The notes beneath the pieces are model-generated. The model was not told the DNA's origin, made no database searches, and saw nothing but the letters and a program-made list of their open reading frames with translations. This document shows, piece after piece, positions 13,824 through 60,454 of a DNA stretch of 64,000 bases. Position numbers and translations under genes: made by a program. Position 1 is the first letter of the stretch. Every line of letters starts with the position of its first letter. Where the stretch lies: assembly GCA_977017575.1 (NCBI GenBank), contig CDRNVI010000003.1:496001-560000 (forward strand), in the 5' to 3' direction. The stretch comes from Paramoeba atlantica (lineage: Eukaryota; Protista; Discosea).

Positions 13824-14846
13824 TTATAAGCTAATGGTTTCATCGGGAGTATTCTTTTTGCGTGGTTTTTGCGGAGTTATTGAGTTATTATGCGAAAGTT
13901 TTTCTGTTTTAGTTGATTTTGAGAAAAATGACATAAGGTCTTTTGGTCGGTATTCGTCCAGAGCAGATTTCCGTGCCGGGTCTCGGGTATTAGATTCTAC
14001 GCGCTTACTGAAATTAGGGTTAATCGGATGCCATTGCACTTCATCAGACGGCGTGAGTACGTGTTTTACTTCATGGAATGGTAGAGTATTATCCAGCCAC
14101 AAATCTACGGTCTCTGGAGTATCCAATATGGCGGGCATTCGATTGTGACACCACTTCAACGAGTCGGATGCGTCCACAGTAAGTATTGTGCATCGCTCAC
14201 TGTCATAGAGACCTGCAAGAGGCATCAAACGAGATTGAATGGGATTATCATTCAGAACGTTTGCGCTGCGCAGTACATCATCCTGCGAGAGCTCTAGCTC
14301 TCTTTTTGGATATATATAGTACGGTTGAGGATGTGTTTTCGGAGAATTGGGAAAATGCTTCCACTCAATAAAGCCTGTTACTAACACTATGCACCGATTT
14401 TGTAAATGGTGTCGAAAAGAAGCACGTTCAGAAACGGAATCCGAACGAGCATTAAACAATAGCGAAGACATTTGTGGAACTCTAAATCCCCATGGAAGAG
14501 TCTGCAGAACGAATGCCTTTTTGCACGTGTTCGGCGAAACAAGAATAGTTAAGTAGCCACCAGGACTGATGTTACATGAATGTGGACGAAACGCTTCGCT
14601 ATTTATCCACGATATCTCACTCGCTGCAGAGTCAGAATTCTTTGTAGGTCGCACTGTACCCGTTTCATTACATTTTGCAAAACTATGATTCAGTGCGAAA
14701 TCAACGGTATGCGTACTTTGTTCTTGCGAGGTAGCTCTGTTGCTTTGAAGACGCACTGCTTCTCTTCGTCTTCTACGTGCTGTCACCCTTTGAGCGTATT
14801 GAATGAGTACAGGCGCTTCAACGTCGACGGCTGCTCTGCCGCACAT
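13824..14846 (-). CDS. HMCES: SRAP-domain (HMCES/YedK) abasic-site DNA-protein crosslinking protein
   Basis: Starts MCGR (catalytic Cys2), with LFNARSD, RCIV...GFIEWK and HNRMPAIL motifs. Confidence 0.93.
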   Translation of the reverse strand: MCGRAAVDVEAPVLIQYAQRVTARRRRREAVRLQSNRATSQEQSTHTVDFALNHSFAKCNETGTVRPTKNSDSAASEISWINSEAFRPHSCNISPGGYLTILVSPNTCKKAFVLQTLPWGFRVPQMSSLLFNARSDSVSERASFRHHLQNRCIVLVTGFIEWKHFPNSPKTHPQPYYIYPKRELELSQDDVLRSANVLNDNPIQSRLMPLAGLYDSERCTILTVDASDSLKWCHNRMPAILDTPETVDLWLDNTLPFHEVKHVLTPSDEVQWHPINPNFSKRVESNTRDPARKSALDEYRPKDLMSFFSKSTKTEKLSHNNSITPQKPRKKNTPDETISL

Positions 14847-19154: not shown

Positions 19155-21560
19155 TTAACCTCGGGCATCCTCTGATGCATTTCGTAGGTACACATTTCGA
19201 GCGTCGAACCCGACAACTACTTCCCGCACCTCCAGTATGCGCACCGCATTTGCAATCTCTTCCATACTAGTAGACCTCCCGCGCCCTAGCACACGGCGAA
19301 GTTCATCCATTGACACCGTACTTCTCTCGCTTACGGTGCGGAGATACTCCTCGATTCGACGTACAAGCAAATCGGCGCCGCCCTCGGAAACGTGACCACC
19401 AAATACGCGAGCAAAGTTTACCCCGGTGTCACCGGATCCCGCAGTGAGGTCCACTCCGGCACTTCCCCAAGCGGCGTGCATTAGATCACGCGCGTCCTCA
19501 GCGTCGCGTAATGTCACCTGCACACTCCATCGCATACGTGCCCTGGCCTCCGCCAGTCGTATGAGCGACTCCAGCGTACGGAGAGTTGGGCTCATGGAAC
19601 CAAACGAGCGCACTCCCCGCATGGTGCAGTAGGTATTGGTAAGGGAGTTCTGAGCCTCAGCCGAGAGCACAGGATGGATCTGTGAGCGGGCGTACACAAT
19701 AAATTTAGTGAGGTCTGTGGAAGACATAACTTCCTCACCCGTGTTGACGATTCCATCCGTGTCCATCGCATCCGCTGCTTTTTCGTTCTCCTCCGGACCT
19801 GTGGCTCCAAACATGCGAATGAGATGACGAGTTAAGGAGCGGTGAAACTCCTCAGGGTGGTCATCAAGCATTAGATAGATGAGATCAAATCGACTGAGTA
19901 GACCGGGGTCCAAATTTAGATTCTCAACAACGGTAAGATTTTTATCCCACTTACTCTCGCGAGGATTCGCCGCGGCCAATATTGAGGTTCGCGCATTCAA
20001 CTGGCACACAATACCTGCTTTCGCAATACTTAACGTGTGCTGCTCCATGACTTCCTTTAGCACATTTCGCTGTTGCGTGTCCATCTTATCAAACTCATCA
20101 ATACAGCACACCCCACCGTCGGACAAAACCAACGCACCGCTCTCCAGTACGCGATCCCCTGTGTCAGCGTCGCGCACAATGTACGCTGTGAGTCCGACAC
20201 TACTGCTACTTCGACCACTCACATAAACCCCACGATGGGACACACGGTGCACATGCGCCAGGAGCTGCGATTTCGCCAGCCCGGGATCACCACAAAGCAG
20301 AATATTAATTTCCCCACGACAGGAGCTGTTGGAGAATTGTTTTGCGGTTCCACCAAACAGAAGGGTCAGTAGCCCATCTTTCGCGCTCTCCATCCCAAAC
20401 ACGGAGGGGGCCAGGGACTGTCGCAGGAGGTCATAAATATCCGGCCGGTCCGCCATCTCCCGCAAACGCTGCACCTCACCCAAAAAATACGCACTCTCGG
20501 TATCCTTATTCTCCAGACAGCTCAGAAACCTCTCCGTGCCCTCATTCATACGATCGTGTGCATTCCTCTTCTTCAGCCTTTTCAAGTGAATACAATCCAT
20601 ATGGGAGCGTACCACGGCATGGCACAAATACCGGTTCTGCTGGATCCGTGCGGGGTGCACGCGATACACCCCGGTGGCCACCACCACATCCCCGGGCACC
20701 ACACTGTCCACGAGGGCGTTGTACACCGAGAGCGCGATCGTAATCGGGGTCTCCCCGGGACGCATATCCTCGGGGGTCTCCTGTAGCCGAATCACCTGTT
20801 TGTCCTCGTAGGTACACAGGTGGTGCATGAGACGGAAGGTGCCGTGGGCGCCACACCCGGGACAGCGCGGGGGCTCGTGGATTTTACCCCGATCCACGCT
20901 GGAGTGGGTGGTGAGCGCACACTTCTCACACTGGAACTCCGCGTGGGCCATCTCGGGGATCACCGTGGAGGTGCGCACGACAATACCCCGGACCGCGGTG
21001 AGACGCTCCACGTGGAGGTGGGAGAGCGCATTCATCGCGGTCTCGGGGACGTTGTAGGGGCAGAGGACAAGGGGGCGAACCGAGGGGGCGTGGGGGGAGG
21101 TCGAGGAGGGGAGCTCACGCACGCCGGCAGGGGGGGTTGTGTGGATTTGATACCAGTGCTCCCCGAGGGCGAGCTCGAATACCGGGATACAGGTCGTGGG
21201 GTGTTCCATCATGGATTCGTGAAGAAAGGGGTGGGTGTCCGCGAGTGTGGACATGTCCACCTCCAGGCCGCACCCGGGTTGTGTGAGCTCTCGCAGTCGG
21301 CTGTGAAGTGCGGTCTCGGCGTACTGCCGACAGCTACGCTCGAGTTCTTGGATATCGATGGAGGTTCCCCATATGACGGTGCGAGTCTCGGCGGCCGGTA
21401 GTCCGTGCGCCACGGTCATGTTATCTGGAAGGGCGCCCGGACCCTCGACATCGTACGACTCTGGTTCCGGTTCTGCATGGATGGGTGGTGGTGGAACACT
21501 GTCAAAAGGGTCCACGAAGGCTCTTGAGCGAGGCATGCCGTACGTCTCGTCGGGGTCCAT
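19155..21560 (-). CDS. MCM4: DNA replication licensing factor MCM4
   Basis: Walker A GDPGLAKSQ, IDEFDKM, SRFDL Arg finger, CEKC..CPGC zinc finger; N-terminal VIWGTSI and VLESGALVLSDGGVCCIDEFDKM are MCM4-like. Confidence 0.92.
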   Translation of the reverse strand: MDPDETYGMPRSRAFVDPFDSVPPPPIHAEPEPESYDVEGPGALPDNMTVAHGLPAAETRTVIWGTSIDIQELERSCRQYAETALHSRLRELTQPGCGLEVDMSTLADTHPFLHESMMEHPTTCIPVFELALGEHWYQIHTTPPAGVRELPSSTSPHAPSVRPLVLCPYNVPETAMNALSHLHVERLTAVRGIVVRTSTVIPEMAHAEFQCEKCALTTHSSVDRGKIHEPPRCPGCGAHGTFRLMHHLCTYEDKQVIRLQETPEDMRPGETPITIALSVYNALVDSVVPGDVVVATGVYRVHPARIQQNRYLCHAVVRSHMDCIHLKRLKKRNAHDRMNEGTERFLSCLENKDTESAYFLGEVQRLREMADRPDIYDLLRQSLAPSVFGMESAKDGLLTLLFGGTAKQFSNSSCRGEINILLCGDPGLAKSQLLAHVHRVSHRGVYVSGRSSSSVGLTAYIVRDADTGDRVLESGALVLSDGGVCCIDEFDKMDTQQRNVLKEVMEQHTLSIAKAGIVCQLNARTSILAAANPRESKWDKNLTVVENLNLDPGLLSRFDLIYLMLDDHPEEFHRSLTRHLIRMFGATGPEENEKAADAMDTDGIVNTGEEVMSSTDLTKFIVYARSQIHPVLSAEAQNSLTNTYCTMRGVRSFGSMSPTLRTLESLIRLAEARARMRWSVQVTLRDAEDARDLMHAAWGSAGVDLTAGSGDTGVNFARVFGGHVSEGGADLLVRRIEEYLRTVSERSTVSMDELRRVLGRGRSTSMEEIANAVRILEVREVVVGFDARNVYLRNASEDARG

Positions 21561-21643: not shown

Positions 21644-24154
21644 TACCGTCACCCCCCCCCTCACTTGTCCTACCACGTGACATATCCGCTTTTGAGAATT
21701 TGAGGGCGGATATGTCACGTGGTAGTCCCCTGCCCTTGATCATTTTTGAAAAATTATATTTTTCGTATTTTTTAGTTGCAGATACAGTTGTATTTAATAG
21801 AAACCAGTTACGACTATCTCCACAAAGTACGACACTCAGTCTACAGATATTATCTCTTTAAAAACTATTTGAATCATGATGTCTAGAAAGAAGCGAAACT
21901 ATGAACCATTCAACGCTAGTCAAGTACTAGTACCCATCACTTCGAAAACTGAAAACACAGCGGTGATACCCTATGTGGGAGACACGTCTGGAAGTGTAAT
22001 AAATGCTCAACAGGTTTCCGCATCACAGAGTGCATCTGAGCGAAAAATACGCGTTGACATCACCATCCAGCAAAAGCGTAATATTTGTGCTGCGCTTGAC
22101 AACGGAAAAAGTCAAGCGAAAGTGGCACAAAAATACAAGGTTGACTGTAGCACTGTACGCAAAATTTATTCAAAGAAAAAAGAATGGCAGCAACTTGTGC
22201 ATCTCGGGTACGGAAACAAATTCCAATATCACCCTCCACTCCGAAATCGTGAGGTGTATCAGGGTGGATTGGAAACTGTGCAGGTGTTGAGAGAGTCGCT
22301 AGTTTCAGTGACCAAGAGCATGATGGTCAAATACTTCAACGAAGTTTCTGATCACTTCCGGAACCTTACTGACCGAGGCCAACAGGCATTCTGGTTGCGC
22401 TTTTGTAAGTGGGCAAACATTTCTGTTCGCCGGGTGAACGGTTGCACCCAGTTACTTCCTGTGGATGCAGAAGAAAAAGTGCGAAACTGGAAAGATATGC
22501 TTTCTCTCATGAATGCTGACTGTGGCGGTTACAAAGTAATTGTTCATGGAGACGAAACACCTGTTGCCTGGGAGGCTGTGGCAAATCTAACATATGAATT
22601 TCGTGGAACCAAGCGCGTCAAGATATGTACAACTGGAAAAGAGCGTAACATTACAACTTGTTGGATGTGGTGTCGTTCTTCGAAAAATTGTGATGACACC
22701 TGGTCGCACCTAATGAACCCACCTCACCTGATTTGGAGCGCGCAATCAGAGGTTGGACCCATTGCACAAGAAACCAAGCGAGCCAGCGTGAAATGTAAAT
22801 GTACCAGCACTGCGTCGAAACGGTCGCTACTCGCGTATTATATCTATCAGATATGATAGAGCGATATATAGATATATCGCGCTAGTAAAACGGTCGCTAC
22901 TCGCGTAACTCGAGGTTACGCGGCACATCGCACTAAGGAACTGCTTCTGTACTTGAAGGAAAGGCATATCGATGTTTTGTTTATTCCTGGCGGATGTACC
23001 CCATTAGTACAACTTATGGACACAAGCGTTAACAAAACTTTTAAGAAGAACTACATGGACAAGTTTGCATACTGGCGTGCGGCACGCAGCTTTAAGGCCC
23101 TTGAGGCACCGGAACGCATGCTAATTACTCGTTTTGCGGTTGAAAGCCTTCGTGAAGTGGATCTCGGTGAGCTTAACTCGTGCTTTGAGAAACATTATCT
23201 ACCAGCACTATTCCGAGGACATGAAGAAATATCTTTATCAGCAGTCGACGAGCTGCGTTCAAGCACATTAAGTATAACCTCAGGAATGGAAGAGGCGGAG
23301 CATGAGGCTAGTGCAGTATCTGAGGTGACAAATTTGGTTGAATCTTCTGAAGGAGGTGATAACGAAAGGGATATAGTACACGTTGCGAGTGAGTTGTCAC
23401 AGTTAAGGGTAGAGAATAATAGTTTTTTTGCTGTACCATTTCCAAAATCAAGTGACGTGGCAGTTGTACAAGAGTGTTGCTATTGTACACTTGTGAATCT
23501 CGTCAGACGTGAATGTAGCGAGTATGGTTGTAAACGAACCTTCCATCATATGTGCGCGATTGAAGTCAAGGGGGAGGAAAATGATGACCGTTGTATACTT
23601 CATTAAAGATCAGAAACTGTTTTATTAAAAATGATAGCTGTATTATAATAAAGCAGAATAAATTTAAAGTGCATTTTCTGTTTTAGCGTTATACGTTTTC
23701 CTATATTTCATAAAATTAATATTCGCGCACTTTTTGTTTACTTGGGTTTTTTTACATGCTTTAATTCAGTTGATATTGTTTTTCCCTTGTAAACACCATT
23801 TGTATTCATATACAATGTATTTAATCTATTGTTACGTGGTCTCACGTTATATCTATCGTTCGCGTTATATTCGGAAAGCTGTTCAAACGATAAAGCTACC
23901 GTTTCTGTAAAAAAAACAACTTCCTCTGAAAGTTGGGACCTCCTCGTGGTCTTCCCTGGCACTGCCATCTCGCTGATGGTACTGAAGCCGACCTAATAAG
24001 TTCGAAAAAGAGTTTTTCCATGTACACGGATGTATACAAAAATGTGCCATACAATTCCTCTTGATACTACGTGACTTGTCCTACCACGCGACTTATCCGC
24101 CTTTTCCGCTTTTTTGGCCTTTTCGTCGGGACAAGTGAGGGGGGGGTGACGGTA
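21644..24154 (+). mobile_element. Full-length pogo-like (Tc1/mariner superfamily) DNA transposon with TIRs and TA target duplication
   Basis: Left TA-CCGTCA-C9-TCACTTGTCC (21644-21670); right GGACAAGTGA-G8-TGACGG-TA (24129-24154). Subterminal CTTGTCCTACCACG repeats at both ends; encloses transposase ORFs. Confidence 0.93.
21876..23606 (+). pseudogene. pogo/Tigger-type DDE_1 transposase, broken into two ORFs; C-terminal PHD-like Cys cluster
   Basis: N-terminal HTH (QKRNICAAL...AKVAQKYKVDCSTVRKI), GDETP (first Asp), YAAHR...FIPGGCTPLVQLMDTSVN (third Asp). The site of the second Asp is disrupted at about 22820-22915. Confidence 0.9.
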
Positions 24155-29098: not shown

Positions 29099-30585
29099 TA
29101 TTTATGTTCAAGGCTCGTGGTGATTTTGTAGTTATAAATAAGTGTATCAGGGTTACCCATTTCTTTGGTAAAATCACTCGTATATTCCTTTTAGTAGATT
29201 TGTTACTAACCGTATTGATTTGTTACTAACCGCAAATTTCATTCAGATTTACTCTCCAACAATGTCCGGATTCATGAGGCCACGCCTTCGCCTTCTACGC
29301 CCCTGCCCCCCACCCCTACCCATTCTACACTCCGCATTCCTGTTCTTGCACTGAGATAAGTAGGTACACCGCACCGAGATCGCACCGAATCCCCACCCGC
29401 AGCCCCTCACATGTATGCACCTCCGGTAATTCTTTTTTTTATTTGGGTCATTTTTCGACTTTTATAAAAATATATGATTCATAAAAAAATGTTTCATTGA
29501 ATAAATTATGAAACTTTTTTTGAAAATTGTATACCGTTTTTTTATCGAATGGATCGAAAGCGTCATTCCGAAAGTATGGGGAACATTGATCTGCTCCCCT
29601 GGTTTATCGACCAGCACCGCGGTGGATTCCTGAGAAAAAGAGGAAGTGGTTTGCGGAGCTTTTTTTAAATAACTGTGAAAATACATATTTTCTGAAGTGT
29701 TTTCCATTTTTGAGGAACGTCCGTATAAAAAAATATATGAGAAAATTAAGAGTTTGCCAATATCTAGGTGTTGAGAAAAAATACAAGAGAAAAAATATAA
29801 AAACAATTCACCCCTCCCCTAACTCAGCTGCACCCAGACGCACCCACTTGTTTCAACCCTCTGGCTGTAGGTATTTTTAGATATTTTCAAAATGCCTAAA
29901 ATATCGATTACCTAAAACATCAGCACGCATGGTGTGCCAAGGAAAACTATCACGAGGAGCTTGTATCCTGTGATCGTACTGAAAATTGTTGGTTGTGCCC
30001 AATGCAAAACAACCATTCCTGTCGAGGCCACTATGGAGTTCTAGAACCCCCGCTTATCAACTGCGCTCAGCGCAACGTGAAGAGTAAGTTTAAAATGATT
30101 CACGCCCTCACAGGTATTCTAAACCGGCCCCTCGTTTAGGTTAAAAAACAGTTTTGATTTTAGAATTTGGGCAAAAAAATTAAAATTAAATTTCCATTTT
30201 TAAAAATGATGCACAATAAAAAAGTCACAAATTTTTGTTTTCCTGTGTTTCGTTACACAAATAATTGTGTTGAGTGTATTGTCCTTTCCCAATGAAACAC
30301 TAGATTCTATAATTCGGACCGACAAAAGTACAATACATGTGGCTTCCCTCTTCTTTCTTGCTTCTTGAATATTGGCTTCATATCGTGCCTTCCATAATAG
30401 CATCAACAAATATTCCGCTCTCCGTGGAAGCGTTCGTCATTGGACCCAATGCAGTCCCCGGGTGGCCCGTAGTGGACTAAGTGGCACAAGACGACCCACA
30501 GTGGCCCATAGTGGCCCCAAAAATCGAGCGTCGCCGGAGAATCGTGACGACATAGAGGCAAGTGATTCTCTGATAAGTAGCGTAC

Positions 30586-31679
30586 CTAGCTAAGTATAGT
30601 GAGGAGGGGCAACTGTATATGAGCGTAGAGTGTATGATCATAGGGGGTTATTGGTTGAGTGCTGGTGGGGGGATTGTTGTTCACGAAAAAAACATATGCA
30701 TCAAGATTTTTAGGATACGTGTATTTGTCCATCGGACCTGTGATAGTAGAACTGTCAGATACTCCATATCTGGAAGATTGTCCTTTGTGTTCTATTATCT
30801 TCTTTTTAACTGCTTCCACTTTCTCAGGGGTAAGAGGTGGACATCTTCCTTGATGTCCATGTTTATGAAACACTTCCATGTTATGAACCATGAGAGTGCA
30901 CGAAAAAGCATAGTAAAGAAAATCTGGACTACGAGTCCACTGCTTAAAAGCCAGCCATTTGCCACAGCACGAACGAGAAAAAATGTGTTCGACCCGCGAT
31001 CTAAAATGAGCCAACTTTTCATTGAAGCACATTTTACCCTCTGCTTCTGAATCATGATGTTTCTGCACAGACTTAGATTTTGGGCGCTTCGAACACCAAA
31101 TTTGTCTTTAGAATGGGGTACTATTAATCTATCAGTAAGACCATCGTAAAATCCCCCGTCAGCAAGAGCGCGAACACGATTGTGTGCCAGAAAATCCAGA
31201 ATACCACTACAGTCCTGAATAACGGCGTCGGATGAGGCTCCACAGTACAATGTGTCTGCTGTGAAGCAAACATACCCAGACATTGTAGATGCTACGAGCG
31301 CTTTCACGACGTGTGTAGCATATTTGGGTTGATAGCAGTGAGGCAAGCTATCAACGTACAGTGGCACTGTGTCCATCACCACCTTTATGTCCTTATCCCA
31401 AAAAGGAAGAACTGCGTTTGATTCATGGTGCAAAATATCAGAATCCAAACAAAGCCATGTATCCTTCATATCGGAATGCAGTTCTTTAAAAAACGCGGGT
31501 ATCTTGTCAGAACAAGAACGTTCAGACCAACCGGTTCCGAATTTCAAGGATATGAGTTCTGATACAATGTCGTAGCTACCCCCACACCGTAAAAAAAGAA
31601 AGCTCGCAAAAATTTCTTCAAAGGGATAAAATTGTTTTAGAAAGGTGAGAGCGCGATGAGTTAAACCGCATAAAGACAA
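30586..31679 (-). pseudogene. PIF/Harbinger/ISL2EU-type (DDE_Tnp_4) transposase split by a single frameshift
   Basis: Frame 1 has VVMDTVP, YQPKY..HVVK, GASSDAVI and ALADGGF; frame 2 has FNEKLAHFRSRVEHIF. The shift lies between about 31110 and 31050. No ATG seen at the 5' end of frame 1. Confidence 0.85.
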
Positions 31680-31761
31680 CTCTGAATATTTATTTTCGTA
31701 GGGAGCATCAGGTTCAGGTGCATCGCGGGATGTATCAGGTGGTGCGTCACGGGTTTCAGCT

Positions 31762-32225
31762 ATAAACCCCTCACAGCGAATAAGTCACCCCCCTCTTTGT
31801 TTTGTACAACGAGGCTTCGGGGGGTTGCGGCACCACTTTTTCGTTCAAAATTTTGAGATCTGCACGTTCCCGCTGTTTTTAGACCTTTTCACAGATAAGA
31901 AATTAAAACTCATTTTTTTGATGACGCTTTTACAGAGAACGAGATTTCTCGTTTGCAACAAAACTCAGCAAAAACGGACAGAAATAACTGATTTCCTCAT
32001 GGGAGGAAAATATTTAATTAGTTAAAGTGTGAGAAATTGGTCTCTTGAAAAATGTGAAGAAAGTGATAATCCATCTATCGGATGCACGCATTTGAGAGTT
32101 TTGGTTCCATGCTTTAACGCACAAAGTCTTTGTGTTGGGAACAGCAAAATGCAACAAAAATGAGCTCAAACGGACACTTGGCTGAAAAGTTAGAGGGGGG
32201 TGACTTTTCGCTGTGGGGGGTTTAT
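31762..32225. mobile_element. MITE-like element bounded by ~34-bp imperfect inverted repeats
   Basis: ATAAACCCCTCACAGCGAATAAGTCACCCCCCTCT (31762-31796) versus the reverse complement at 32192-32225 (one mismatch, one indel). Internal AAATTTTGAGATCTGCACGTTC also occurs at about 13568-13589. Confidence 0.65.
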
Positions 32226-32584
32226 TAACGGATGCGTCATATTCCGGGGTGTCAATACGACCAAGCATCAGTATCAAGTAGAGGAAAATTATTATGATTT
32301 TATTAGAGGAAAGAAAGATTCTATATTAAATAAAATTCTTTGATTTACGATTTTTTTTGAATTCCTTACTTCCAAATTCCTTACTTGCAACTTTTTCACT
32401 TACAACATAACCGCTTAAAACTTACTTGCGATTTACAGGCCTACAACTTACTTACGACTTTTAAAATGCAAAGTGTTCGAATTTGAAGTTGAAGCAATGC
32501 GGGAAACGCGTTGCCTCTTCGGATTGCTGACCAGGTTTTCATCGTTCCGAACTTCAACTATCTCAACTTCCTGATCTGCGGCAG

Positions 32585-33343
32585 TCAAAGTTTGACGAGG
32601 AGGTCGGCAACGTGAATAAGATGAGCATTCGAAGTCTTTCCCTTCTTGAGAATCCGCAGTTGAACAAGGTCGTCCCGGATAGAAAGAAGTTCAGTAGGAT
32701 CATTCTCCTCCATTGAATTGCCAAGTTTGTCCATAATCTCACCCTGAACTTGGTGAACAAACTTTCGATCAATTTCAAATCTTGAGTCACCTAGAACCGA
32801 CAAAAAACTTGCTACCAACGCAGTCTTTGTGTCTCTCAGAACCTTCTTTTCATTGGCGCGCTTGCCCTCATACAAGTTCCAGAGGTTTCGCAAAAACTCC
32901 TGCAGAGAGCCCCGCTCCTCTGGATGCAACGCATGGTTAAAATACGAGCAAACTGCTTCGGCCGAACGCGAGATATATCTTTTTATAGAAACATCTTTTG
33001 CCCTTTTGATAAGAATAAGGACGTGGGCCACATGTCCGAACGCAAGCTTCGTACCGCAGAGCATGCGACCCACGTACTCAGCACATGCGCTAAGAACATT
33101 TTCTTCCTTCAGACCACGAGCATAAATGTGGTCTAAGGTGTTGGCGGGAAGTCGTTCTCCATCTTGAGGGGAATTGCACAACGGGCAGTAGTTTGAACCT
33201 ATGAGAACTGAAACCCTGTGACACTGAATACAGGGGTCCTTTACATCGCATTCGATGGGACAGGCACACATTACACACGTTCGGGGGTCTCCAAGACTTA
33301 CGTTACGGTCTGCTTTGCAGCGTGGACAAAACATTTTTTCCAT
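32585..33343 (-). CDS. Hypothetical protein with N-terminal double zinc-ribbon (four CxxC) and helical C-terminus, embedded among transposon relics
   Basis: CPRC, CVMC, CIQC and CPLC within the first 56 aa; intact 252-aa ORF with ATG. Confidence 0.65.
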   Translation of the reverse strand: MEKMFCPRCKADRNVSLGDPRTCVMCACPIECDVKDPCIQCHRVSVLIGSNYCPLCNSPQDGERLPANTLDHIYARGLKEENVLSACAEYVGRMLCGTKLAFGHVAHVLILIKRAKDVSIKRYISRSAEAVCSYFNHALHPEERGSLQEFLRNLWNLYEGKRANEKKVLRDTKTALVASFLSVLGDSRFEIDRKFVHQVQGEIMDKLGNSMEENDPTELLSIRDDLVQLRILKKGKTSNAHLIHVADLLVKL

Positions 33344-33560
33344 TTTAGTAGCCTTATTACTGTGAAACAGACGTTTAATTCTAGATGTACATAGTTACTT
33401 CATTTCGTTCTATTTTACAACTGCTGTACGTGGTCGACCAAAAATACATGAGAACGAAATCCTTACGAACTCAATATACACAACTTAAAAGCAATCAAAA
33501 TGCACAACTTAAACTTTGAAGTGTCCAATCGTGGCACCGATTGTCCCATAGTGGCCCACA

Positions 33561-34956
33561 GTGGCCCCAGAAATGTACCGAAGTTGCTGGGGGTCCATTG
33601 GAAAAATGGAGGAATGGCGCCACCGTCTTCCGCCGAATATTCCCATCGAAGCCATGGACAAAGGTACCCCCAGAACATCGGAGGATTTAGAGAATGACAT
33701 AGGCTTACTCGCACGTGATCTGTGGGGTAAAATTAAGAACAGTATTGATGATTCCGAAATTTTCGGCATTGCTATGGACGGCGGTACTGATCAACTGCTA
33801 GGTGAACACATTATGCTGGTCGTGCTTTATGCTGGACCTGACCACTGGGTATTACCTCCAATGTACCACAACAGGCACGGTGCATTCAATGGTCAGGAAA
33901 TTGGAACGTCGATTGTACATGATCTGCGACGACACCTCGGCGTTCAACGTCTTCTGAAGTGGGCCTATATAATTGTAGACGTTGCCGCCGTTAACCACGT
34001 AGCACGGGACGAGGCTGAGAATGAGTTGCGAGAACTCTACTTACCACTGTGCATTCTGGGGAACCAAGATTGGATCAATTTAAACAACGCCATTAACAGT
34101 GAAGTTTTGCGGATCGCGCATAATGGAATACGGTTGATACAGCACACATGTAGCTCTCATCCCATGCGTCGGTCACTTCCTAAACAACGTCTCTAAAACC
34201 GCACTCTCTCCCTGGACAAGTACTCCACTATTTAAATTAGACAAGTCCTTTACGAACGCTTTCTGGGGTGGAGGAACAACTTCTTCAAGAGGGCAGTACA
34301 AAGGGGTCGTTTTCGAAGTCCGACTTTTGGAATACGATAAAGCTGGAGTTAGATTGGTACAGAGGTCTTCTTGATGATCAAAGTATGAGCACAACAGAGA
34401 AAGCAAAAGTTGTCAACACCTTGATAAGTTGCTTACAAACGTTACGTCAATTCAACAGAAACATGGTGAGTCTCTAATTGCACATCTTATGTCGGATGAA
34501 AGCTTTCAGGAAAAAGAAAACGCGCTAAATGTTTCTGCCGTGCTAGACGAATTTGAAAGGGCCAAGCAAGCCAAGGTGAGGGCTACCCCTGTACTGGGAG
34601 GAGTTGCACGATGGATTTCCGATAAATTCACTTCCGTTGAGTATATCGCGCAAAAAGCACCGACAATTGCAAAATTTGTGGTGGAAATTTGCGCCAAGAA
34701 CAGGGCTCCACCGTCTTCGATCGAACAGTACTGGGTAATTCTAAAAGAAGAGGGGGCCATTGACGCGATCGCGGTGGAAGGGCATCGATTCCTTAAGCAA
34801 TGCGGACCTATTCGTGACGTTCTGAAGCATTTTTCGGATGTACCAGCGTTTCCAACAGTAGCTCGCGTTTCGAGCGCGTTGAATGAACTCGAGGCATACC
34901 TACAAACGGAACCCATCATATTAGAAGCCTTTCAGCGTCATCGATCCCGATTGTAA
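33561..34956 (+). pseudogene. hAT-like transposase, frameshifted and C-terminally truncated
   Basis: FGIAMDGGTD (first catalytic Asp), YIIVDVAAVN (second Asp), HTCSSH (CxxH), VARWIS (TRW-like). Spread over three frames; no C-terminal SERxFS motif seen. Confidence 0.7.
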
Positions 34957-36220: not shown

Positions 36221-39200
36221 TTACCTAGGCCATGAGTGTTCTGTGCCATGCGGCGGGGTAGCCTCGTGAGGACCTATTTTATATTCCTGCGTGGGCTTCT
36301 CCGTCCTAAATTTATACTCCGGACTTCCCCATCGTTCCACCGGCTGGTCTCGCTTCATCGACTCCACAGTCTGGAGTTTGTGTTGAACGTTCCGCGCGGC
36401 TAGCTGGTAGCAATAGTTAATCGTCCGCAGGTACTTCCCTCCCCAGGAGGCAAACCCATGCACGCTGTGCTGACGCTCCTCTACCCCTTGCCGGACCTTT
36501 TCATACAGCGGAGCCAGCTTGGCGTGTGCCAGAAAGTTTAGCCGGGTGTGAGCGTTGTGCATGGCCCCTAGAAGCGCTTTCTGTGCCTCCGCAATCCCCA
36601 GACTCCCTTCAGAAGTATTATTCAAACGGAGGTCGGTGACAATTCCGGAGCCGTCCACCTCCGCCACCGCAAGGGCTTGTCCAACAGCATGCTCGTAATC
36701 CCCCCTCGCGGACAGACTGGTCACCTTGTCCTGGGCGTACCACACAGGGCCGTTCAGGTTTCGCATATCTACGTCCTCCTGTTCGAGTTCGTCATAAATC
36801 CACCACCCCGACTCGGAACCCTCAAAGGATCGAGTAAACAGCGCGCGGCGTCGGGACATCCACTCATCGAGCAGTAACCCGGGATGAAGCTGCTCGTGTA
36901 CGGCAAACAACGACCGTTCCGTGTCAATCTCATCCTCAGAGATGCCGCGGACGTTGGGATCCTCCACACCCACTGCAGAGCGCAATGTATGTGCAACATA
37001 CGCCATACTCACCTCCCCCTGCGGAGTCACGCGTTGTCCGAGCTCAAATTCCTGATCAATCGGGATATCATACTCCCGAGAACGTAAAAACCGCACCAGT
37101 CCGGGAAGCTCTTGCTTCGGAAAAAACTCCTCATCCACAAGTGTATCCCCGACCCCCTCCTTAATATCCTGCTCCAAGGCATCCTGCACCACAAAAGCCT
37201 CGGAATGGCCCTCCACACAACATGCGGGGTGTCGCGTTGGGGTGACACTCCTACGGTAGGCTCGTATCCGAATCCGGTATGTCCCCCCAGGCAACGAGCT
37301 CGGGTCCCCCCCAAGCCCTCGCCCCACATACGGCAGCAGCACCTCCACACGCGGTTCCCCCGTGAGCTCCACGTTATCGTGCAATACCGCCGCAAACACC
37401 CAGCCCTCGTGTTCCGTGTCGTCGGGGTGCTGGTCGGAGTCCACAAAGGACTGCGTTAATCTCATGTCCTCTTCGGGTTCTGTGTCGTCCAGTAATCCCA
37501 CAGAGGGGTCCGTGAGATACGCATGGGCGGCATCACACGCAGCCGGGCGGCGTAACACGTGCTGACAGAACCACAGGGTGTACCAGGAGACGTCCCGTAG
37601 CCGGGGGTCTTGCGCACACAGCGCTGTGGCCTCGGAGTGGGTCGCGGCGGAGGCTGCGCGGTCCTTTGGAGTTTTCTTTCGCCACAGGGTGAGCTCGAGA
37701 GTTGCTTTTTGTCGTCGATGGAACGCGGCAAGGATGCGATCCTTGCCGGAAGGGGGGAGGGGGGTGTCGAGCTCTGGGGGATGCCAGTGGAAGGCGATGG
37801 TGGCCTTGGTGCCGAGTTTCCAAGCCAGCGCGGGGTGGTCCCCGGTGGAGGTACGTCGTAGGGAGATATCCGTGAGGGGACCCCCACTCTCGGTGGAGGC
37901 AGCAAACTCCTCACGGGCCCTTTCTAGGTAGCGTCGCCGGAGTTTTCCCAGTCTCGAGCGAGCGGAGCGTAGCACCTTTGCGAGGTTTTCTTCCCAATCG
38001 ACCATTTGTACTGACGAGGCACTCTCTTTGGAGTGGTCTTCCAGGGCATCCACTCCGGCCTCGGCCATAATGTCAGCGTGGCTCTGCCGATAGGTAAAAG
38101 GGGATGAGTAGTCAATAGCGTCCGCATGGGGACGTGATAGGAAATACGCCTTCGCTAAGGCACGGACCTGCGTGGGCGTTCCATGTTGGAAAACGTACTC
38201 CCTACTTCCGTTGGGTGTGTGCTGGACGTAATTTCCTGAACCAAAGAACGTCCAATTGAGTTTGCACCAGATTTCATTCATACTCGGAATGATGGTTCCG
38301 CTTCCGAAGTCAAATGTGCTCTTGCGTAGGCTGTCCAAAAGCGCTTTTACAATTACATCCTCTGCTCCTGCGTTCTCGCATCGTACCCGTTGCCATGAGC
38401 GTGCAAAGCGCAGCTTGTGGGCATAGGTGGTGTACATGTGTTCACGCTGCATTTCATTCACGCGTTCATAGGTAGACCAGTACTCGTTGAGAGTAAAGGA
38501 ACATCCAGGAATCGTTTCATTTAACATTGCGGTTATGGACTCGTGTTCCGACTTCCACTCGGGCGTTGTGTCTCTCGGATCCGTAGGGTCAAAAGATCCT
38601 TCTAGAATTCGGATTTCTTCAAGCGAACGTTCATGGAGACACATCTGAATTTGCTCCTCCTCTGTCATTATTGACCAAGCCTTTCGTACATTCTTTTCTA
38701 TTTGTCTGATGCGTCTATTAGCATAAATGTCATGAACCTTCGAATATTGCGACGCTATGCGATCTGCAATAAACGCCCAACTTTTGGCTCTTTCAATATC
38801 TTTACTCAGCATTGCAACGAAATCCTTGCGCTCGTCGTTTAAAGGCTTTACACGATAACAAAAATCTTTAAGTTCCGCGCCATCGTAGTATGCAAACGCA
38901 GAGAGATTCAAATTTGAGTGAGGTTGATCGCCTTGAGAGTTTCTCGCAGTAGACCAAAACTGGTAAAGCTTTTCAGCATCCGCGTTTTCTAAAAGGTGTT
39001 CGAAATCCTTCATATGACGAGGCCTTGTGCCGAGTAGGCTATCAATCCCCTTCGCGGTTTCCTGAAAAGTGGGGCAGTCTTCCCATCGTGTAGCTTCTAG
39101 ATCAGCAGGATCTGCTAAAGGCGTTTTTTCATCACCCGCAAAACTCAGTTTTCCTACGTCGCTTGGGGCTCGGGAATGCTGTCGCATGTCCATTAAAATG

Positions 39201-39634
39201 CGTTCTTTGAAAATGCGCCGGTAAAAATCTTTAGATTGTTTGCGATGAGATTCGTCAGGACTGGCAAGATCCGTTCCAAGAAAGTCCTCACGCAGGATGT
39301 TGCGTCGGCGAGTAATTTCTTCGGGTGTTAGTGAGAGTGGGGCATCCACTACAGGATCCTTACCCACTTGAAGCCATCGTGCTATAACTTGATCTCGTGA
39401 GAGTCCGAAAACTGACCCCTCCGGACCCCAGGAAAGGCTGTGGTCCATATCCGTAGCCAGACTTTTAATAATGTTCACGGGTGGCTCTTTTTCCTTCGCG
39501 TCTGCATCCGCCGGAGATGTGGTAGATGTGGAGCACCAGCGACTCTCCCTTGATAGTGTACCTAGTGGAGACGAAGGCGCGCAATGATGCACCAAACTTC
39601 TCTCTCTGCGTTGCACAAAGCGTCTTATACTCAT
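36221..39634 (-). CDS. Large (1137 aa) probably mitochondrial protein, lineage-specific; possibly a mitoribosomal or RNA-processing subunit
   Basis: Long intact ORF with an Arg/Ser-rich presequence-like N-terminus (MSIRRFVQRRERSL...RWCST); no catalytic motif recognised. The function is a guess. Confidence 0.75.
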   Translation of the reverse strand: MSIRRFVQRRERSLVHHCAPSSPLGTLSRESRWCSTSTTSPADADAKEKEPPVNIIKSLATDMDHSLSWGPEGSVFGLSRDQVIARWLQVGKDPVVDAPLSLTPEEITRRRNILREDFLGTDLASPDESHRKQSKDFYRRIFKERILMDMRQHSRAPSDVGKLSFAGDEKTPLADPADLEATRWEDCPTFQETAKGIDSLLGTRPRHMKDFEHLLENADAEKLYQFWSTARNSQGDQPHSNLNLSAFAYYDGAELKDFCYRVKPLNDERKDFVAMLSKDIERAKSWAFIADRIASQYSKVHDIYANRRIRQIEKNVRKAWSIMTEEEQIQMCLHERSLEEIRILEGSFDPTDPRDTTPEWKSEHESITAMLNETIPGCSFTLNEYWSTYERVNEMQREHMYTTYAHKLRFARSWQRVRCENAGAEDVIVKALLDSLRKSTFDFGSGTIIPSMNEIWCKLNWTFFGSGNYVQHTPNGSREYVFQHGTPTQVRALAKAYFLSRPHADAIDYSSPFTYRQSHADIMAEAGVDALEDHSKESASSVQMVDWEENLAKVLRSARSRLGKLRRRYLERAREEFAASTESGGPLTDISLRRTSTGDHPALAWKLGTKATIAFHWHPPELDTPLPPSGKDRILAAFHRRQKATLELTLWRKKTPKDRAASAATHSEATALCAQDPRLRDVSWYTLWFCQHVLRRPAACDAAHAYLTDPSVGLLDDTEPEEDMRLTQSFVDSDQHPDDTEHEGWVFAAVLHDNVELTGEPRVEVLLPYVGRGLGGDPSSLPGGTYRIRIRAYRRSVTPTRHPACCVEGHSEAFVVQDALEQDIKEGVGDTLVDEEFFPKQELPGLVRFLRSREYDIPIDQEFELGQRVTPQGEVSMAYVAHTLRSAVGVEDPNVRGISEDEIDTERSLFAVHEQLHPGLLLDEWMSRRRALFTRSFEGSESGWWIYDELEQEDVDMRNLNGPVWYAQDKVTSLSARGDYEHAVGQALAVAEVDGSGIVTDLRLNNTSEGSLGIAEAQKALLGAMHNAHTRLNFLAHAKLAPLYEKVRQGVEERQHSVHGFASWGGKYLRTINYCYQLAARNVQHKLQTVESMKRDQPVERWGSPEYKFRTEKPTQEYKIGPHEATPPHGTEHSWPR

Positions 39635-40060: not shown

Positions 40061-41968
40061 TTAGCTTGCTTTCCTTCCAATACGAAACATCCTTCGGACA
40101 CCCCATGGAAGAACCACACCCACAACCAACACAACCCCCACAATCGTAATGGAGTACCTCACTACCTTGCGCACCACCCCACCCGCTACTTTACACAACG
40201 GGTTGTACCACGGACAAGACCCTCTCCTGCGAGACCCCTTCTCCTTCGCCACAACATACTCCACTCGATCGAACCGAACCGGAACTTGCAACTGTGGCAT
40301 TTTCGGAGTTATTCCCTCACTTTCCCACCGCAGTGTAGCCTGACAGTAGTCCTCCCCCTCCACAAAGACATGTAAAAAACACGTCTGTGTCCCCGCGGGT
40401 CCGAGGGTGAGACTTAACTCCACCTCAGCCTCCTCCCCGGGCCCGAGGCTCTGGTGCACCGCGGGGGTGCGTACCGTACTACTGGCATTACACCCCATAG
40501 TGAGCGACCCGGCAGTGTCCTTCTCAAAGTTACGTACCCTCACTTTTAGCACCCCCCGGCCCTGGGCAAAGCCATGGCCATGGGGAGTCATAGTAGTACT
40601 CACCGTATTCGTACTCTTAGTCGTAGGACTCGTAGCCGTAGGACTCGTAGTCGTAGGACTCGTAGCCGTAGGACTCGTAGTCGCAGGACTCGTAGCCGTA
40701 GGACTCGTAGTCGCAGGACGCATAGTCGTAGGACTCGTAGCCGTAGGACTCGTACTCGTAGGAATCGTAGTCGTAGGACTCGTAGTCCCACTACCCGTAC
40801 TCACAGGACGCGTAGTCCCCCTCCTTGTCCCCCTCCCCACGGTGGCCCCCACCAAGACCACGTGCATGCGGCCGGAGCCTACGGCATGGATCTCGGTGAG
40901 GTGCTCGGTGGCATCAATCGTGAGGGTGACCAGAGAGGTGTGCCGCTGGGGGGGCAGCCCGTAGCTGAGGGCGTTGTCCCCGTCGCGGTACCCCAGGAAG
41001 GGGCCGAAGTCCGCGGGGAAGAACGAGGTGGTGTTGCCCACCCGCGCGGAGGCGGTGGCCTCGGAGAGGAGGTCGGCGAGTTGGTTGTGGAGACCGTGCC
41101 CGGCGGGGGCACGGCAGCGCTCGGGTTGGTGGACGTAGGCGGTGGGGGAGACACCGATTTTGTTGCACTGGGAGCCGTCCAGGGAGAATTTGGTTTTGTC
41201 AATCAGCGCGGGGTTGGTGCCGTTTTGGGAGACGACGAAAAATTTGTCGGAGAAGGTGGGGGGGTGGACGGGGGTCGCAAAGTCAGCGTGGTACTCTAAG
41301 GTGAGGTTTTCTTTTCGTACGGTCGGGGTGGAGGTGCTGACCTGAATGAATTCGCGCCAAGTGGTGGACAGATTCGCTGCAAGGGAGATCGTGGATTCGA
41401 TTTGCGGGGGTTGAACCTCAAAGACGTGATACCAGGTGTGGTTGTACCGTAGACAGGTCACCAGAGAGCGCATGGTACCCATCCGGCAGCGGAGATCTCC
41501 GCGAAACAGTCGTGGGGGACAGAGACCGGCAACCGCACAGGCCGAACACCGGCAGCAAAACCCATGGCGTGAGCCACACATTTCCTCTACTACCCTATCA
41601 CAGTCTATGACATTGGTGAGGATGTGAGTCTCATACGGCGCCGCATCCACAGTTTACTGATAGACGAGGGGGTAATGCAAAACCACCGCAGGCTTTTTAA
41701 GAGATAACTCAATGGGAGAACGAAATTGGCGAGAGACACCACTGGAGGTATCCGTCGCCTTGGTGAGCAGAAAAGTCTCCGTTCCGTAAATGGCGCCTTC
41801 CTCCACAGAAAGGGTAACTTTGAGTAGGTGTCGCAACTTGCTAGGGGTTTTCTTATCCAAGACCGACGTAACGGAGGTCGCAACAATAGGGCACTTCGCG
41901 AAAGAAAGGTGTGTCGCAAGGACACACAATATCAACAAAGGTGGGGGACTATTTGATTTTTCACCCAT
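40061..41968 (-). pseudogene. HAP2: HAP2/GCS1 gamete fusogen, full length (635 codons) but with one in-frame TAA at codon 105
   Basis: Track ORFs 41654-42061 and 40061-41650 are the same frame: signal peptide MGEKS..LLILCVLATHLSFA, LKVTLSV, PIELSLKKPAVVLHYPLVYQ*TVDAAPYE, GFCCRCSAC, TCLRYNHTWYHVF, QCNKIGVS..AY..QPERC...LHNQL, Ig-like domain III, TM and basic tail. Confidence 0.9.
40618..40812 (-). repeat. 15-bp coding tandem repeat (11 good + 2 degenerate units) encoding (A/T)TSPT inside HAP2
   Basis: TAG(T/C)CGTAGGACTCG units start at 40618, 40633, ... 40768. Confidence 0.95.
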
Positions 41969-42439
41969 TACAAGGAAATATGTATTTAAGTGAAACTGAT
42001 TGAAGTACTTAAAAGTGTATAAATTACTTACACTGTTCGTATGTAAGATGTACATTTGCATTTACACCTCCCTACAACCCGGGAAACTGCCTAGTCCACA
42101 ATATACTAGTACTACTTTGCGAGAGCTCTCCGATGAGCTATTATTTTCGAGGATTAGCTAAATTTTACAAAATTTAGACCCTCCCAGCATCTGCTTTGCA
42201 CCCCTGTATGCCTTGCAAGAAAATATTTAACTGGAGGTGTTTGGTTACGTTGCAATCGTGAGGGTTACCAGTCCGTTTCGAACTTCGAACACCATGATTT
42301 ACAATGCGTATGCTTTCACACTTTATCTACTATCTCAAACTGGGGATATCTTGACTTGCATGTGCACGCAGTTATTTTTTTAGCGGTGCTCAGCAAAATC
42401 CCATGAAACTACCCCAAGTGCTGAAAATGGTAGTGCATA

Positions 42440-43939
42440 TTACGTTTGTGGTGCATTTTCGCTTCGTTTACCGTCGATGTAATAATATGCTGGCACCCGC
42501 ATCGAGCATAGCTCCTCGGAAGAAGTCGGATGCACACCAATCGTATTGTAAAAATCTTTTACTTTTGCTCCAAGACGCACAGCCACAGCTACCCCTTGAA
42601 TCATTTCCGGGGTATCGGAACCTAGCAAATGTACTCCAACGACTAACCCAGTATCGTAATCCGACACCAGTTTCATGAGGACTGCCTTGTGTGAAGCACC
42701 CGTCAGCTGGTGCATCATGGGCGTAAATCTAGTTTTGTACACCGCAACGCGGGAAAATTTGCTTGCAGCATTCTCCTCAAGAATGCCGACAGTAGCAATG
42801 GGAGGAATAGAAAATACCGCAGATGGGATATTCGTGTGATCTACCGGAACTTGTGAATTGCCAAACATATTACCAGCAACGCGAAATCCTTCATGAATGG
42901 CTACAGGAGTAAGATTGACTCGGTCTGTTATATCTCCCACAGCCCAAACGTTGGCCAATGAGGTTTGACTAAATTCATTGACGTTTACAGCTCCATTTTT
43001 GGCTATATGAACACCTGCCTCTTGCAGACCTAGAGCTGCCGTACGTGGCTGTCGTCCTGTTGCACAGATAATAAGATCCAGATCCCGAAAAATGTTTCCC
43101 TTATTGGTAAACACACACTTTTTTCCTGAAGTTGACTGTATCGCAGTAGCTTGTTCATTGAAATGAATTTCTACTCCCGGACATTTGCTTAATTGTGCCT
43201 TGAGCTCTTGACGACAATCAACATCAAACCCACGAAGAAATAGTTCACCGCGATAAAGCAAAATAATGTTAGGAACACCTAGCCCATGTAGAATGGAGGC
43301 GAATTCGACGGCGATGTATCCTCCCCCAATTATTAGAACTCGGTTGGGTTGCTCAGATAAATAAAAAACTTCATTGCTTGTCACGACATGCTCAATACCC
43401 GGAATTGCAGGCTTGATAGGCCAACCACCGCAACTGAGCAAAATGTGTTCGCTCTTCACCGTGTGCTCTATAGCTGATTGTTCATTCCTTTGATCAATAT
43501 CTTCTGTGATATATACACTCTTTCCGTCGCGACCAAGTGCTCCCCAACCTTGCACCAGGTCCATCTTAGCATCCTTGAACATTTCAATATAGGACTCGTT
43601 TATGCTCCGGATTGTTTTATCCTTCTTCTGCATCAGAGATCCCCATTCAAGTTTCGGAAAAGCAGGAAAATTCCAACCAAATCCTTTGGCATCTTGAAAA
43701 TTGTGATAAAAATTAGCCGCTTGTACCAAAAGCTTTTTAGGAACACAACCAACATTGACGCACGTACCTCCAACGGCCGAGAAATGAGGCGGTCCATGAA
43801 AAATTTGTGGCTCCACAACCAGAACTTTTGCTCCGTACAGGGTCGCACTGTAGTATGCTGCCTCCAGCCCACCAGACCCTGCACCGAGCACTATGAGATC
43901 GTACGAACGAGCAGCTGCGGCTACTAGAGGTAGAGTCAT
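42440..43939 (-). CDS. TR: Trypanothione reductase
   Basis: GAGSGGLEA FAD motif, kinetoplastid-type HGPPHFSAVGGTCVNVGCVPKKL redox loop, IGGGYIAVEFA, and C-terminal TIGVHPTSSEELCSMR. Confidence 0.95.
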   Translation of the reverse strand: MTLPLVAAAARSYDLIVLGAGSGGLEAAYYSATLYGAKVLVVEPQIFHGPPHFSAVGGTCVNVGCVPKKLLVQAANFYHNFQDAKGFGWNFPAFPKLEWGSLMQKKDKTIRSINESYIEMFKDAKMDLVQGWGALGRDGKSVYITEDIDQRNEQSAIEHTVKSEHILLSCGGWPIKPAIPGIEHVVTSNEVFYLSEQPNRVLIIGGGYIAVEFASILHGLGVPNIILLYRGELFLRGFDVDCRQELKAQLSKCPGVEIHFNEQATAIQSTSGKKCVFTNKGNIFRDLDLIICATGRQPRTAALGLQEAGVHIAKNGAVNVNEFSQTSLANVWAVGDITDRVNLTPVAIHEGFRVAGNMFGNSQVPVDHTNIPSAVFSIPPIATVGILEENAASKFSRVAVYKTRFTPMMHQLTGASHKAVLMKLVSDYDTGLVVGVHLLGSDTPEMIQGVAVAVRLGAKVKDFYNTIGVHPTSSEELCSMRVPAYYYIDGKRSENAPQT

Positions 43940-58882: not shown

Positions 58883-60454
58883 CTACCGTTTAAAATTCCT
58901 CATATTCTGTTTCTTCCCCCTCCCTTTCAGCTTGCTCACCCGCGCGGGTTTATACCCCGGAACGCGTGCCTCAGGCGCCACCGTCCGTCGTTTATTCTGA
59001 TTAAACCGTCTTTGGTTTTCTATTTTTCGTTTTATTTTCTTTTTCATACGGAATTTGGTGTGCAAACTTGTCTTTGTCGTCACCAGCCGCTCCATATCTT
59101 CTTTTCGCTTCTCCGATTCTCTCTTTCGTTTACGCACCGGTGGGGCGGGAGGTGCCCTCGGTTTTTGTACCCTCGACACGCGATCCTGGACGACACAAAA
59201 ATGGGAAGGGTAGGCTTGGAGAAACGACTTAAGACTCGTGGTGAGGAGCCCGTCATAGCGCAGATTAAACTGACCCCAGGGCATGTCGAGACGATCGCCC
59301 AGTGTGCCCAGAGGCAAGGAGCGGCCAGGGCTTGCCGGGAGATGCCCGAGGAGCTCATCGAGCGCCATCGAGCGGTACGCCTCCTTTCGTTCATGCGCCT
59401 CCGCGCGTCGCGGCATGGAGAGCGTTGTGATGCCATCCGCTGTGGCTTTATGGTATTGTTTTTTAAGATGAAGTAATTTGGCTGTTGGGTTGTTGGCTTT
59501 ACTTGTCGTTGTTGCTGGTTTTTGTGCAGTCGAGGTGACGGTAAAATATCCGGATCGATGAAGGAGTTGGGGGAAACTTCCCCACAAGGCATTGAGGTGA
59601 AAGGGAGACCACCCGGAGCGGTGTTCTACTACGGAGAGGGGGAGTGGGGAAGATAACGCGTGGGCGATGGTGTGACAAAAGATTTGAAGAAATTCGCCAC
59701 ATTGGGATCCGTAACGGGCTTCGAAGGGACTGGGAATTGTCCAACTGTGGGGGAGTGTGATGATGTGGGGTACACCAAAAAGTTCTGACAGATCATCGGT
59801 GGTGGTTTCTTCAAGATGTCGACATAAATAGGAAAGAATAGCAATGTGAAGAAGGTCGTGTTCCGAGTGAGTTTTAAAGCTGCTTTTGTTTAAGATGGCT
59901 CGGCAGTGCAGGAGGCAACGAGACAAATGTTTCTGGGAGATAAAGGCTGCATGAAGCGCCCATAGCAAAAGAATTCCTGTTGCCTCTTCGAACTTCACAC
60001 ACATTCCTTCCCATGGTTTCGAAAGAGAATTCCGCGCTGCGGATTCATAATCAAAGCCTTCTAGCCTGGAGCCTAGCTCGTTTGATGATGTGGTGGGCGT
60101 ATATGTTAAGCATCTTTTGCTGTTATAGTCGCCAGATATGGTTAGAAAATATTTACCTTCATTAGAAAATGCATTTTTCAGTCCTGCGTCTTTCATTTTT
60201 CCCTCCACATCCTCCTCAGCATCGTGATTTTTTAAACCAATAGGTGAGGTTCTAAGCTCCACATTCTGGGAATCTGTCGGTTTAATGACCTTGCTTACTT
60301 TGCGTGGAGCTCTATGATGCTGTTTCCTGTGCTCCGGCCAGAGAGAACGAAAACACTCTTGAGAACAGAAGAACCCCTTTTTGGGGTCTGGAAGACAATC
60401 TGGGCATTGGAATTTCGGAGGTTTGCCGCAATTTTCACAAGACACGGAATTCAT
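58883..60454 (-). CDS. Protein with N-terminal MYND-like/zf-C6H2 finger and Lys/Arg-rich (nucleolar-like) C-terminus
   Basis: CENCGKPPKFQCPDC...FFCSQECF...W.EH...H resembles the MetAP1-type zf-C6H2. No MetAP catalytic domain seen. Confidence 0.75.
   Translation of the reverse strand: MNSVSCENCGKPPKFQCPDCLPDPKKGFFCSQECFRSLWPEHRKQHHRAPRKVSKVIKPTDSQNVELRTSPIGLKNHDAEEDVEGKMKDAGLKNAFSNEGKYFLTISGDYNSKRCLTYTPTTSSNELGSRLEGFDYESAARNSLSKPWEGMCVKFEEATGILLLWALHAAFISQKHLSRCLLHCRAILNKSSFKTHSEHDLLHIAILSYLCRHLEETTTDDLSELFGVPHIITLPHSWTIPSPFEARYGSQCGEFLQIFCHTIAHALSSPLPLSVVEHRSGWSPFHLNALWGSFPQLLHRSGYFTVTSTAQKPATTTSKANNPTAKLLHLKKQYHKATADGITTLSMPRRAEAHERKEAYRSMALDELLGHLPASPGRSLPLGTLGDRLDMPWGQFNLRYDGLLTTSLKSFLQAYPSHFCVVQDRVSRVQKPRAPPAPPVRKRKRESEKRKEDMERLVTTKTSLHTKFRMKKKIKRKIENQRRFNQNKRRTVAPEARVPGYKPARVSKLKGRGKKQNMRNFKR

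Follow-up and report, generated by a model that had tools for sequence, protein, structure and literature searches.

A probable loss-of-function allele of the gamete fusogen gene HAP2/GCS1 on one of two homologues of a diploid kinetoplastid

The window analyzed here, a 64-kb stretch of contig C3 of its own genome assembly (G000; 45.7 Mb in 248 contigs), carries a HAP2/GCS1 gene on the minus strand (positions 40061..41968). This allele, which belongs to the C3 haplotype, comprises 635 codons plus a terminal TAA, and is interrupted at codon 105 by a TAA nonsense codon (41654..41656, minus strand). Re-reading of the sequence bore out the original prediction of a single in-frame TAA with open frame on either side. 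The 104 codons that precede the stop (41657..41968, minus strand) begin with the ATG at 41968-41966 and end in ...YPLVYQ; they encode an N-terminus that resembles a signal peptide, followed by the first ectodomain strands. The 530 open codons that follow (40064..41653, minus strand) start with TVDAAPYE and extend to the final TAA (40061-40063), and encode the remainder of domains I and II, a linker insertion, a domain III-like beta region, a putative transmembrane helix, and a short tail. A signal peptide, membrane anchor, and tail had also been predicted, and both the signal-like N-terminus and the C-terminal hydrophobic helix are visible in the sequence.

Immediately upstream lies a gene for trypanothione reductase (42440..43939, minus strand), assigned by its PDB matches: the best 20 are all trypanothione reductases (E ~1e-156), with glutathione reductases following at ~1e-93. 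The downstream neighbor (36221..39634, minus strand) is an open reading frame of 1137 amino acids without a Pfam match, which is syntenic with a 1080-amino-acid gene located downstream of P0001, an ortholog of the HAP2 described here. Almost all of the long open reading frames of the window are found on the minus strand and, on the basis of this arrangement and of the trypanothione reductase neighbor, we read the source of the window as a kinetoplastid.

The Pfam HAP2-GCS1 profile (PF10699; cut-off 27.4 bits) matched the portion of the gene after the stop with E=4.8e-34 (118.2 bits), while its match to the portion before it is weak, if collinear (profile positions 10-65, E=0.0017); in a six-frame search spanning the stop, this allele and its counterpart on contig C30, which is intact, each scored 143 bits. 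The intact allele also matched the HAP2 ectodomain of T. cruzi (5OW4; E=1.4e-26, residues 48-405), as well as 7S0K, 5OW3 from Arabidopsis, and the HAP2 entries 5MF1, 6DBS, and 6E18. As first proposed, the site of the stop fits the HAP2 motif without gaps, the corresponding segments being YPLFYERNFNAKPYE in T. cruzi 5OW4 and YPLYYQSDFNNKPYE in 7S0K. The stop itself falls on a variable position, which is R, S, or R in the aligned structures 5OW4, 7S0K, and 5OW3 (R in T. cruzi). An AlphaFold2 model of the intact allele, built on a three-sequence alignment, had a mean pLDDT of 39.4 and is too poor for use; at that low confidence, its beta-rich secondary structure, with helices at residues 10-21 and 592-631 and strands at 470-549, is consistent with a class II fold. 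On its profile and structure matches, the gene is a bona fide HAP2, a member of the class II gamete fusogen family whose role in fusion is known from other species.

HAP2 orthologs occur across the kinetoplastids, Perkinsela among them (PMC5601477), and a second HAP2 gene is reported among trypanosomatids only in Leishmaniinae and Strigomonadinae (PMC10630298). A single HAP2 locus, with two alleles, is present in G000. The window gene shares the PF10699 domain with the trypanosomatid proteins (T. cruzi 5OW4; T. brucei Tb927.10.10770; Leishmania HAP2-1), and its alignment with T. cruzi 5OW4 takes in a Cys-rich segment (GFCCRC...GLC) and the CNKIGVS motif. It further resembles them in its predicted type I membrane protein layout and in its kinetoplastid setting beside trypanothione reductase. 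Unlike them, it has 11 of the 12 cysteines of the T. cruzi-aligned region, bears an 82-residue Thr/Ser/Pro-rich insert before the C-terminal beta domain, and has one allele with a stop at codon 105.

A word-based protein search with HAP2 returned two relatives, P0001 and P0002, both from ENA metagenome assemblies; the nearest database HAP2 proteins are thus metagenomic, at 43% and 34% identity. The small yield of this search is probably due to the Thr/Ser/Pro repeat, which takes up search words. P0001, the closer of the two (overall identity 43%, or 48% when aligned locally), also keeps the local synteny, in that HAP2 is followed by an open reading frame of ~1100 amino acids. Both relatives differ from the window gene in being uninterrupted and in lacking the Thr/Ser/Pro insert.

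Across G000, the six-frame search with PF10699 returned exactly two loci, one with a single TAA (C3) and one without a stop (C30), both of which sit in 666-amino-acid six-frame frames. Over 3.9 kb, 42 substitutions but no indels distinguish these loci. C3 has A and C30 has G at window position 41656, so that TAA on the former corresponds to CAA (Gln) on the latter, and the uninterrupted frame that the C3 allele lacks is present on C30 over all 635 codons. When the whole window was compared with 80 kb of C30, the two were collinear at 98.8-99.8% identity, with 303 SNPs plus short indels; the exceptions were two window-only stretches (21646-24149 and 30445-33595). SPO11, DMC1, RAD51, HOP2, and MND1 are likewise represented by two copies each, on different contigs, and the allelic pairs of these five families and of HAP2, the six with clear matches, are 98-99% identical. 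Because the window is collinear with C30 and six gene families are paired on different contigs, G000 appears to be a phased diploid assembly with a haploid size of ~23 Mb, in which C3 and C30 would represent homologous chromosomes. Divergence between the haplotypes is uneven, at ~0.19% in positions 1-21645 of the window versus 0.7-0.8% in 24150-64000, a pattern that would be expected if the haplotypes undergo recombination or gene conversion.

Public sequencing runs were available as assembled contigs only, a form from which minor variants drop out. For positions 40900-43100, run X1 (sample S1) yielded one contig, with a mean k-mer depth of 58.9, that is identical to the window including the TAA. 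Run X2 (sample S2) yielded one contig, at a depth of 4.1, with the C30 base at 10 of 10 differing sites, including the CAA. The short contigs of run X4 (sample S3) are mosaics of both haplotypes, none of which extends across 41656, and run X5 (sample S4; possibly RNA, its type being a guess) yielded no contig. At the level of contigs, DNA reads at 41654-41656 support TAA in X1 and CAA in X2. Since both bases are backed by contigs independent of G000, the stop is real and a simple consensus error is excluded. The haplotigs do differ by many homopolymer-length changes, as well as by a complex deletion of 1 bp in MCM, an essential gene, and residual error in the assembly is plausible; however, the variant at codon 105 is a clean substitution that is reproduced in the X1 contig, at a depth of 58.9, together with all of the adjacent window-type SNPs. 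We consequently find it highly improbable that the TAA is an error of assembly or consensus and that both alleles are truly CAA.

The same contigs bear on the idea that two strains or sublines were pooled in the assembly, in which case sample S1, the source of run X1, would be a TAA-only, homozygous HAP2-null clone incapable of fusion. Over ten variable sites the X1 contig is 100% of the window haplotype, while that of X2, from another sample, is 100% of the C30 haplotype, and no single run among X1, X2, and X4 had both bases at 41656 in its contigs. When reads are assembled into contigs, however, bubbles are popped and a single path survives, and long reads favor the same haplotype over kilobases. 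In addition, the mosaic contigs of X4, a third sample, are such as a heterozygote would give, and the allelic pairing of HAP2, SPO11, DMC1, RAD51, HOP2, and MND1 at 98-99% identity resembles that of a phased diploid. We regard such pooling as rather unlikely. Rather, heterozygosity within one clone is suggested by three observations: a single assembly includes both haplotypes, contigs are paired throughout the genome, and the X4 contigs are mosaic.

Regulated readthrough had been raised as one reading of the stop. The same prediction had noted that TAA is a normal stop elsewhere in the window, and genes do end with TAA at 13824, 40061, and 42440. All three stop codons (TAA, TAG, and TGA) each terminate several open reading frames in the window, with at least seven ended by TAA. 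Among 19 other allele pairs that were compared without gaps, none contains an internal stop, and the matches to SPO11, DMC1, HOP2, MND1, and trypanothione reductase are similarly free of them. Readthrough found no support: the code is standard, the base after the UAA is A, and comparison with the sister allele shows a plain C-to-T transition.

UAA followed by A is an efficient termination context. There is a precedent for recoding in Blastocrithidia, a kinetoplastid with reassigned stop codons, and this precedent, along with the 530 codons that are open past the stop, could be taken to favor a UAA decoded by programmed readthrough or by a variant genetic code, with full-length HAP2 still being made. 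Nevertheless, the termination of at least seven window open reading frames by TAA, the lack of internal stops in the 19 allele pairs and in the toolkit genes (a weak HORMA fragment aside), and the A that follows the UAA all stand against such decoding, which we consider extremely unlikely; recoding of the Blastocrithidia kind was rejected on stop-codon usage. Nor does the open frame past the stop need a special explanation, since the allele differs by only ~1% from its intact sister.

The direction of the change could be judged from the two relatives, in which codon 105 encodes Lys (P0001) or Gln (P0002). Because the orthologs have Gln or Lys there, TAA is the derived state, having arisen by a transition that reads C to T in the coding sequence and, on the plus strand, G to A at window position 41656. 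Over the whole gene, 16 nonsynonymous and 12 synonymous changes separate the two HAP2 alleles, for a pN/pS of 0.45, as compared with 0.0-0.3 for most neighbors in the window. Nine of the 16 nonsynonymous differences are taken by codons 400-422, which belong to a tandem repeat. Outside the repeat there are 7 nonsynonymous differences (the stop included) and 10 synonymous ones, for a pN/pS that we estimate roughly at ~0.2; as this value falls within the range of the neighbors (0.0-0.3), the counts appear ordinary and argue against a long period of neutral decay. The stretch of conserved ectodomain that separates codon 105 from the repeat has 3 differences, the stop included, which are too few for dating by dN/dS. 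Only two nonsynonymous differences could be polarized with the outgroups, F481 and H505; at each of them the TAA allele has the derived state, a hint that this allele may not be brand new, although two sites prove nothing.

Two features of the protein might be taken for signs of decay, the first of which had been noted at the outset. Codon 292 (41093..41095, minus strand) is GGT (Gly) in both alleles, in place of a conserved Cys, so that the GSCL motif has become GHGL. The predicted loss of this Cys at GHGLHNQL is confirmed by comparison with 5OW4, 7S0K, and 5OW3, which have GSCLADQ, QSCLHDQ, and WSCLHNQ, respectively. As a mark of decay, however, it did not hold up, given that P0001, an uninterrupted ortholog with 43% identity, is also without the Cys (GYGL); P0002 has kept it (GACL). 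Because the Cys is missing from both alleles and from the intact P0001, in which synteny is kept, its loss is old and compatible with a conserved gene.

The second feature is an 82-residue insertion, rich in Thr, Ser, and Pro and mucin-like, at codons ~385-468 of both alleles. It encloses a 15-bp tandem repeat (40613..40817, minus strand) of 11.7 copies, which can alternatively be described by a unit of 45 bp that extends to 40817, and it holds 11 of the 28 HAP2 allele differences. P0001 and P0002 have an 82-column gap at this place, and no part of T. cruzi HAP2 aligns with the insertion. The insertion is situated between the last ectodomain strand that aligns with the T. cruzi protein and the C-terminal beta region and, judging from that alignment, appears to lie at the junction of domains I and III.

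We also examined the genes of meiosis, as the original prediction had offered a recent loss of sex as one reading of the stop. Open frames were found for 8 of 8 alleles of SPO11 (453 amino acids; C34 and C69), DMC1 (TIGR02238, 527 bits; 391 amino acids; C12 and C2), HOP2 (307 amino acids; C32 and C21), and MND1 (244 amino acids; C39 and C40). GEX1/KAR5 (PF04163) had no match in G000, nor did it have any in the control genomes, and it is hence uninformative. The sole match in G000 to HORMA (PF02301, HOP1) is a fragment at C83:202684-202902, minus strand (locus L027, 3684-3902), which covers profile positions 17-81 (E=1.2e-5) and contains an internal TGA; it has no surrounding long open reading frame and no reported allelic partner. 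This weak fragment, which was set aside as evidence, could be (i) a broken gene, (ii) part of an intron-containing gene, or (iii) a reflection of the insensitivity of the profile.

A recent loss of sex is not what these data indicate: one HAP2 allele is intact, neither haplotype has a broken copy of SPO11, DMC1, HOP2, or MND1, and the 7 nonsynonymous and 10 synonymous differences of HAP2 outside the repeat are not those of neutral decay. One could still argue that HAP2 is decaying on both chromosomes of a lineage that is no longer sexual, with the stop as its first visible lesion, by pointing to the lost Cys and the 82-residue insert within the ectodomain of both alleles, to a whole-gene pN/pS (0.45) above that of most neighbors, to the two polarized changes derived on the TAA allele, and to the lack of a clean HORMA (HOP1) match in G000. 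Yet the loss of the Cys is ancient, being common to the intact P0001, and the nonsynonymous excess is limited to the tandem repeat. The C30 allele is open over its 635 codons, as are the four meiosis genes on both haplotypes. Further, MCM and RAD51 have frameshifted alleles too, so that null-looking alleles are not peculiar to the genes of sex. In our judgment, decay of HAP2 on both chromosomes is quite improbable.

Of the explanations originally put forward, it is a polymorphic null, or heterozygous stop, that agrees with the results: the C30 allele has CAA and is fully open, and both haplotypes occur in independent read-derived contigs. We conclude that the window probably carries a genuine loss-of-function allele of HAP2, produced by a C-to-T change of Gln105 to a stop, on one of the two homologues of a diploid kinetoplastid. 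The nonsense allele is either heterozygous or polymorphic in culture, it is masked by the intact C30 allele, and it is an ordinary null. We infer that the two alleles reside together in one cell, that the intact one works, and that the null is tolerated by selection.

The TAA allele would be expected to make only a secreted stub of 104 residues. Such a stub would lack most of the ectodomain (everything past residue 104, including the Cys-rich region and the fusion-loop domain), domain III, and the membrane anchor, and for this reason the allele should be unable to act as a fusogen. The intact C30 allele presumably supplies HAP2 function when it is needed. As HAP2 acts at mating alone, a recessive null would be costless during clonal growth and could persist or drift, as it would be invisible to selection in a clonal diploid until meiosis. 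In Leishmania, promastigotes in which HAP2 genes have been deleted are viable in culture, and mating is reduced or abolished (PMC10630298).

More elaborate accounts of the nonsense allele can be postulated, either that (i) the null is maintained, with meiosis in the heterozygote giving fusogen-bearing and fusogen-lacking haploids in a primitive system of two gamete classes, or that (ii) a long-clonal diploid is piling up recessive nulls, including those in MCM and RAD51, on its way towards obligate asexuality; we consider these very unlikely. For the ordinary heterozygous null that we favor, a stop that is seen in a single haplotig, when the assembly is phased, signifies neither a pseudogene nor a date for the loss of sex. 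With an intact HAP2 allele and SPO11, DMC1, HOP2, and MND1, this little-studied kinetoplastid retains a large part of the core genes for sex, enough for cryptic sex.

Rather than a targeted loss, the HAP2 stop is one of several lesions confined to single alleles. It is comparable to the heterozygous, recessive loss-of-function alleles of clonal diploid microbes, in which a nonsense allele is likewise masked by an intact homologue, and, as in those organisms, further null-looking alleles are found here on one haplotype each (MCM on C30, RAD51 on C51). In G000, essential genes too have variants that look like nulls and are limited to one allele, which calls for caution in annotation and in the calling of pseudogenes. 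The MCM and RAD51 indels may be errors of assembly; the HAP2 substitution alone has independent contig support.

The window copy of the MCM replicative helicase gene (19155-21560, minus strand; MCM_OB, P-loop, and lid domains) is intact. The C30 allele has a 1-bp deletion and two adjacent substitutions near codon 369 (window 20452), at the start of the P-loop domain, and the resulting frameshift leaves 15 downstream stops. This lesion is on the haplotype opposite to that of the HAP2 null, ~20 kb away; unless it is an assembly error, an essential gene is heterozygous for a null here. RAD51 (TIGR02239, 535 bits) is intact on C60 (L015, C60:253970-257692) and frameshifted on C51 (L016, C51:263142-266744) by a C8-to-C7 homopolymer difference; beyond the first ~2.8 kb of the locus, these two contigs are no longer similar. 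C178 carries a third RAD51-like sequence, unrelated to these, which has an in-frame insertion of 29 residues.

Other differences between the haplotypes were noted within the window. A SRAP-domain gene (13824-14846, minus strand) ends with TAA at 13824-13826, where C30 has TAC, and the C30 allele therefore runs on to a later stop. Each of the two stretches absent from C30 corresponds to a clean empty site there: 21646-24149 has terminal inverted repeats of ~25 bp and a TA target duplication in the style of Tc1/mariner elements, and 30445-33595 is flanked by duplicated CATTGGA. Both appear to be hemizygous transposon insertions and, being hemizygous, are likely to be recent. Finally, a zf-MYND / zf-C6H2 gene (58883-60454, minus strand) has 11 nonsynonymous and 2 synonymous allele differences (pN/pS ~1.6); replacement differences are in excess in no other gene of the window.
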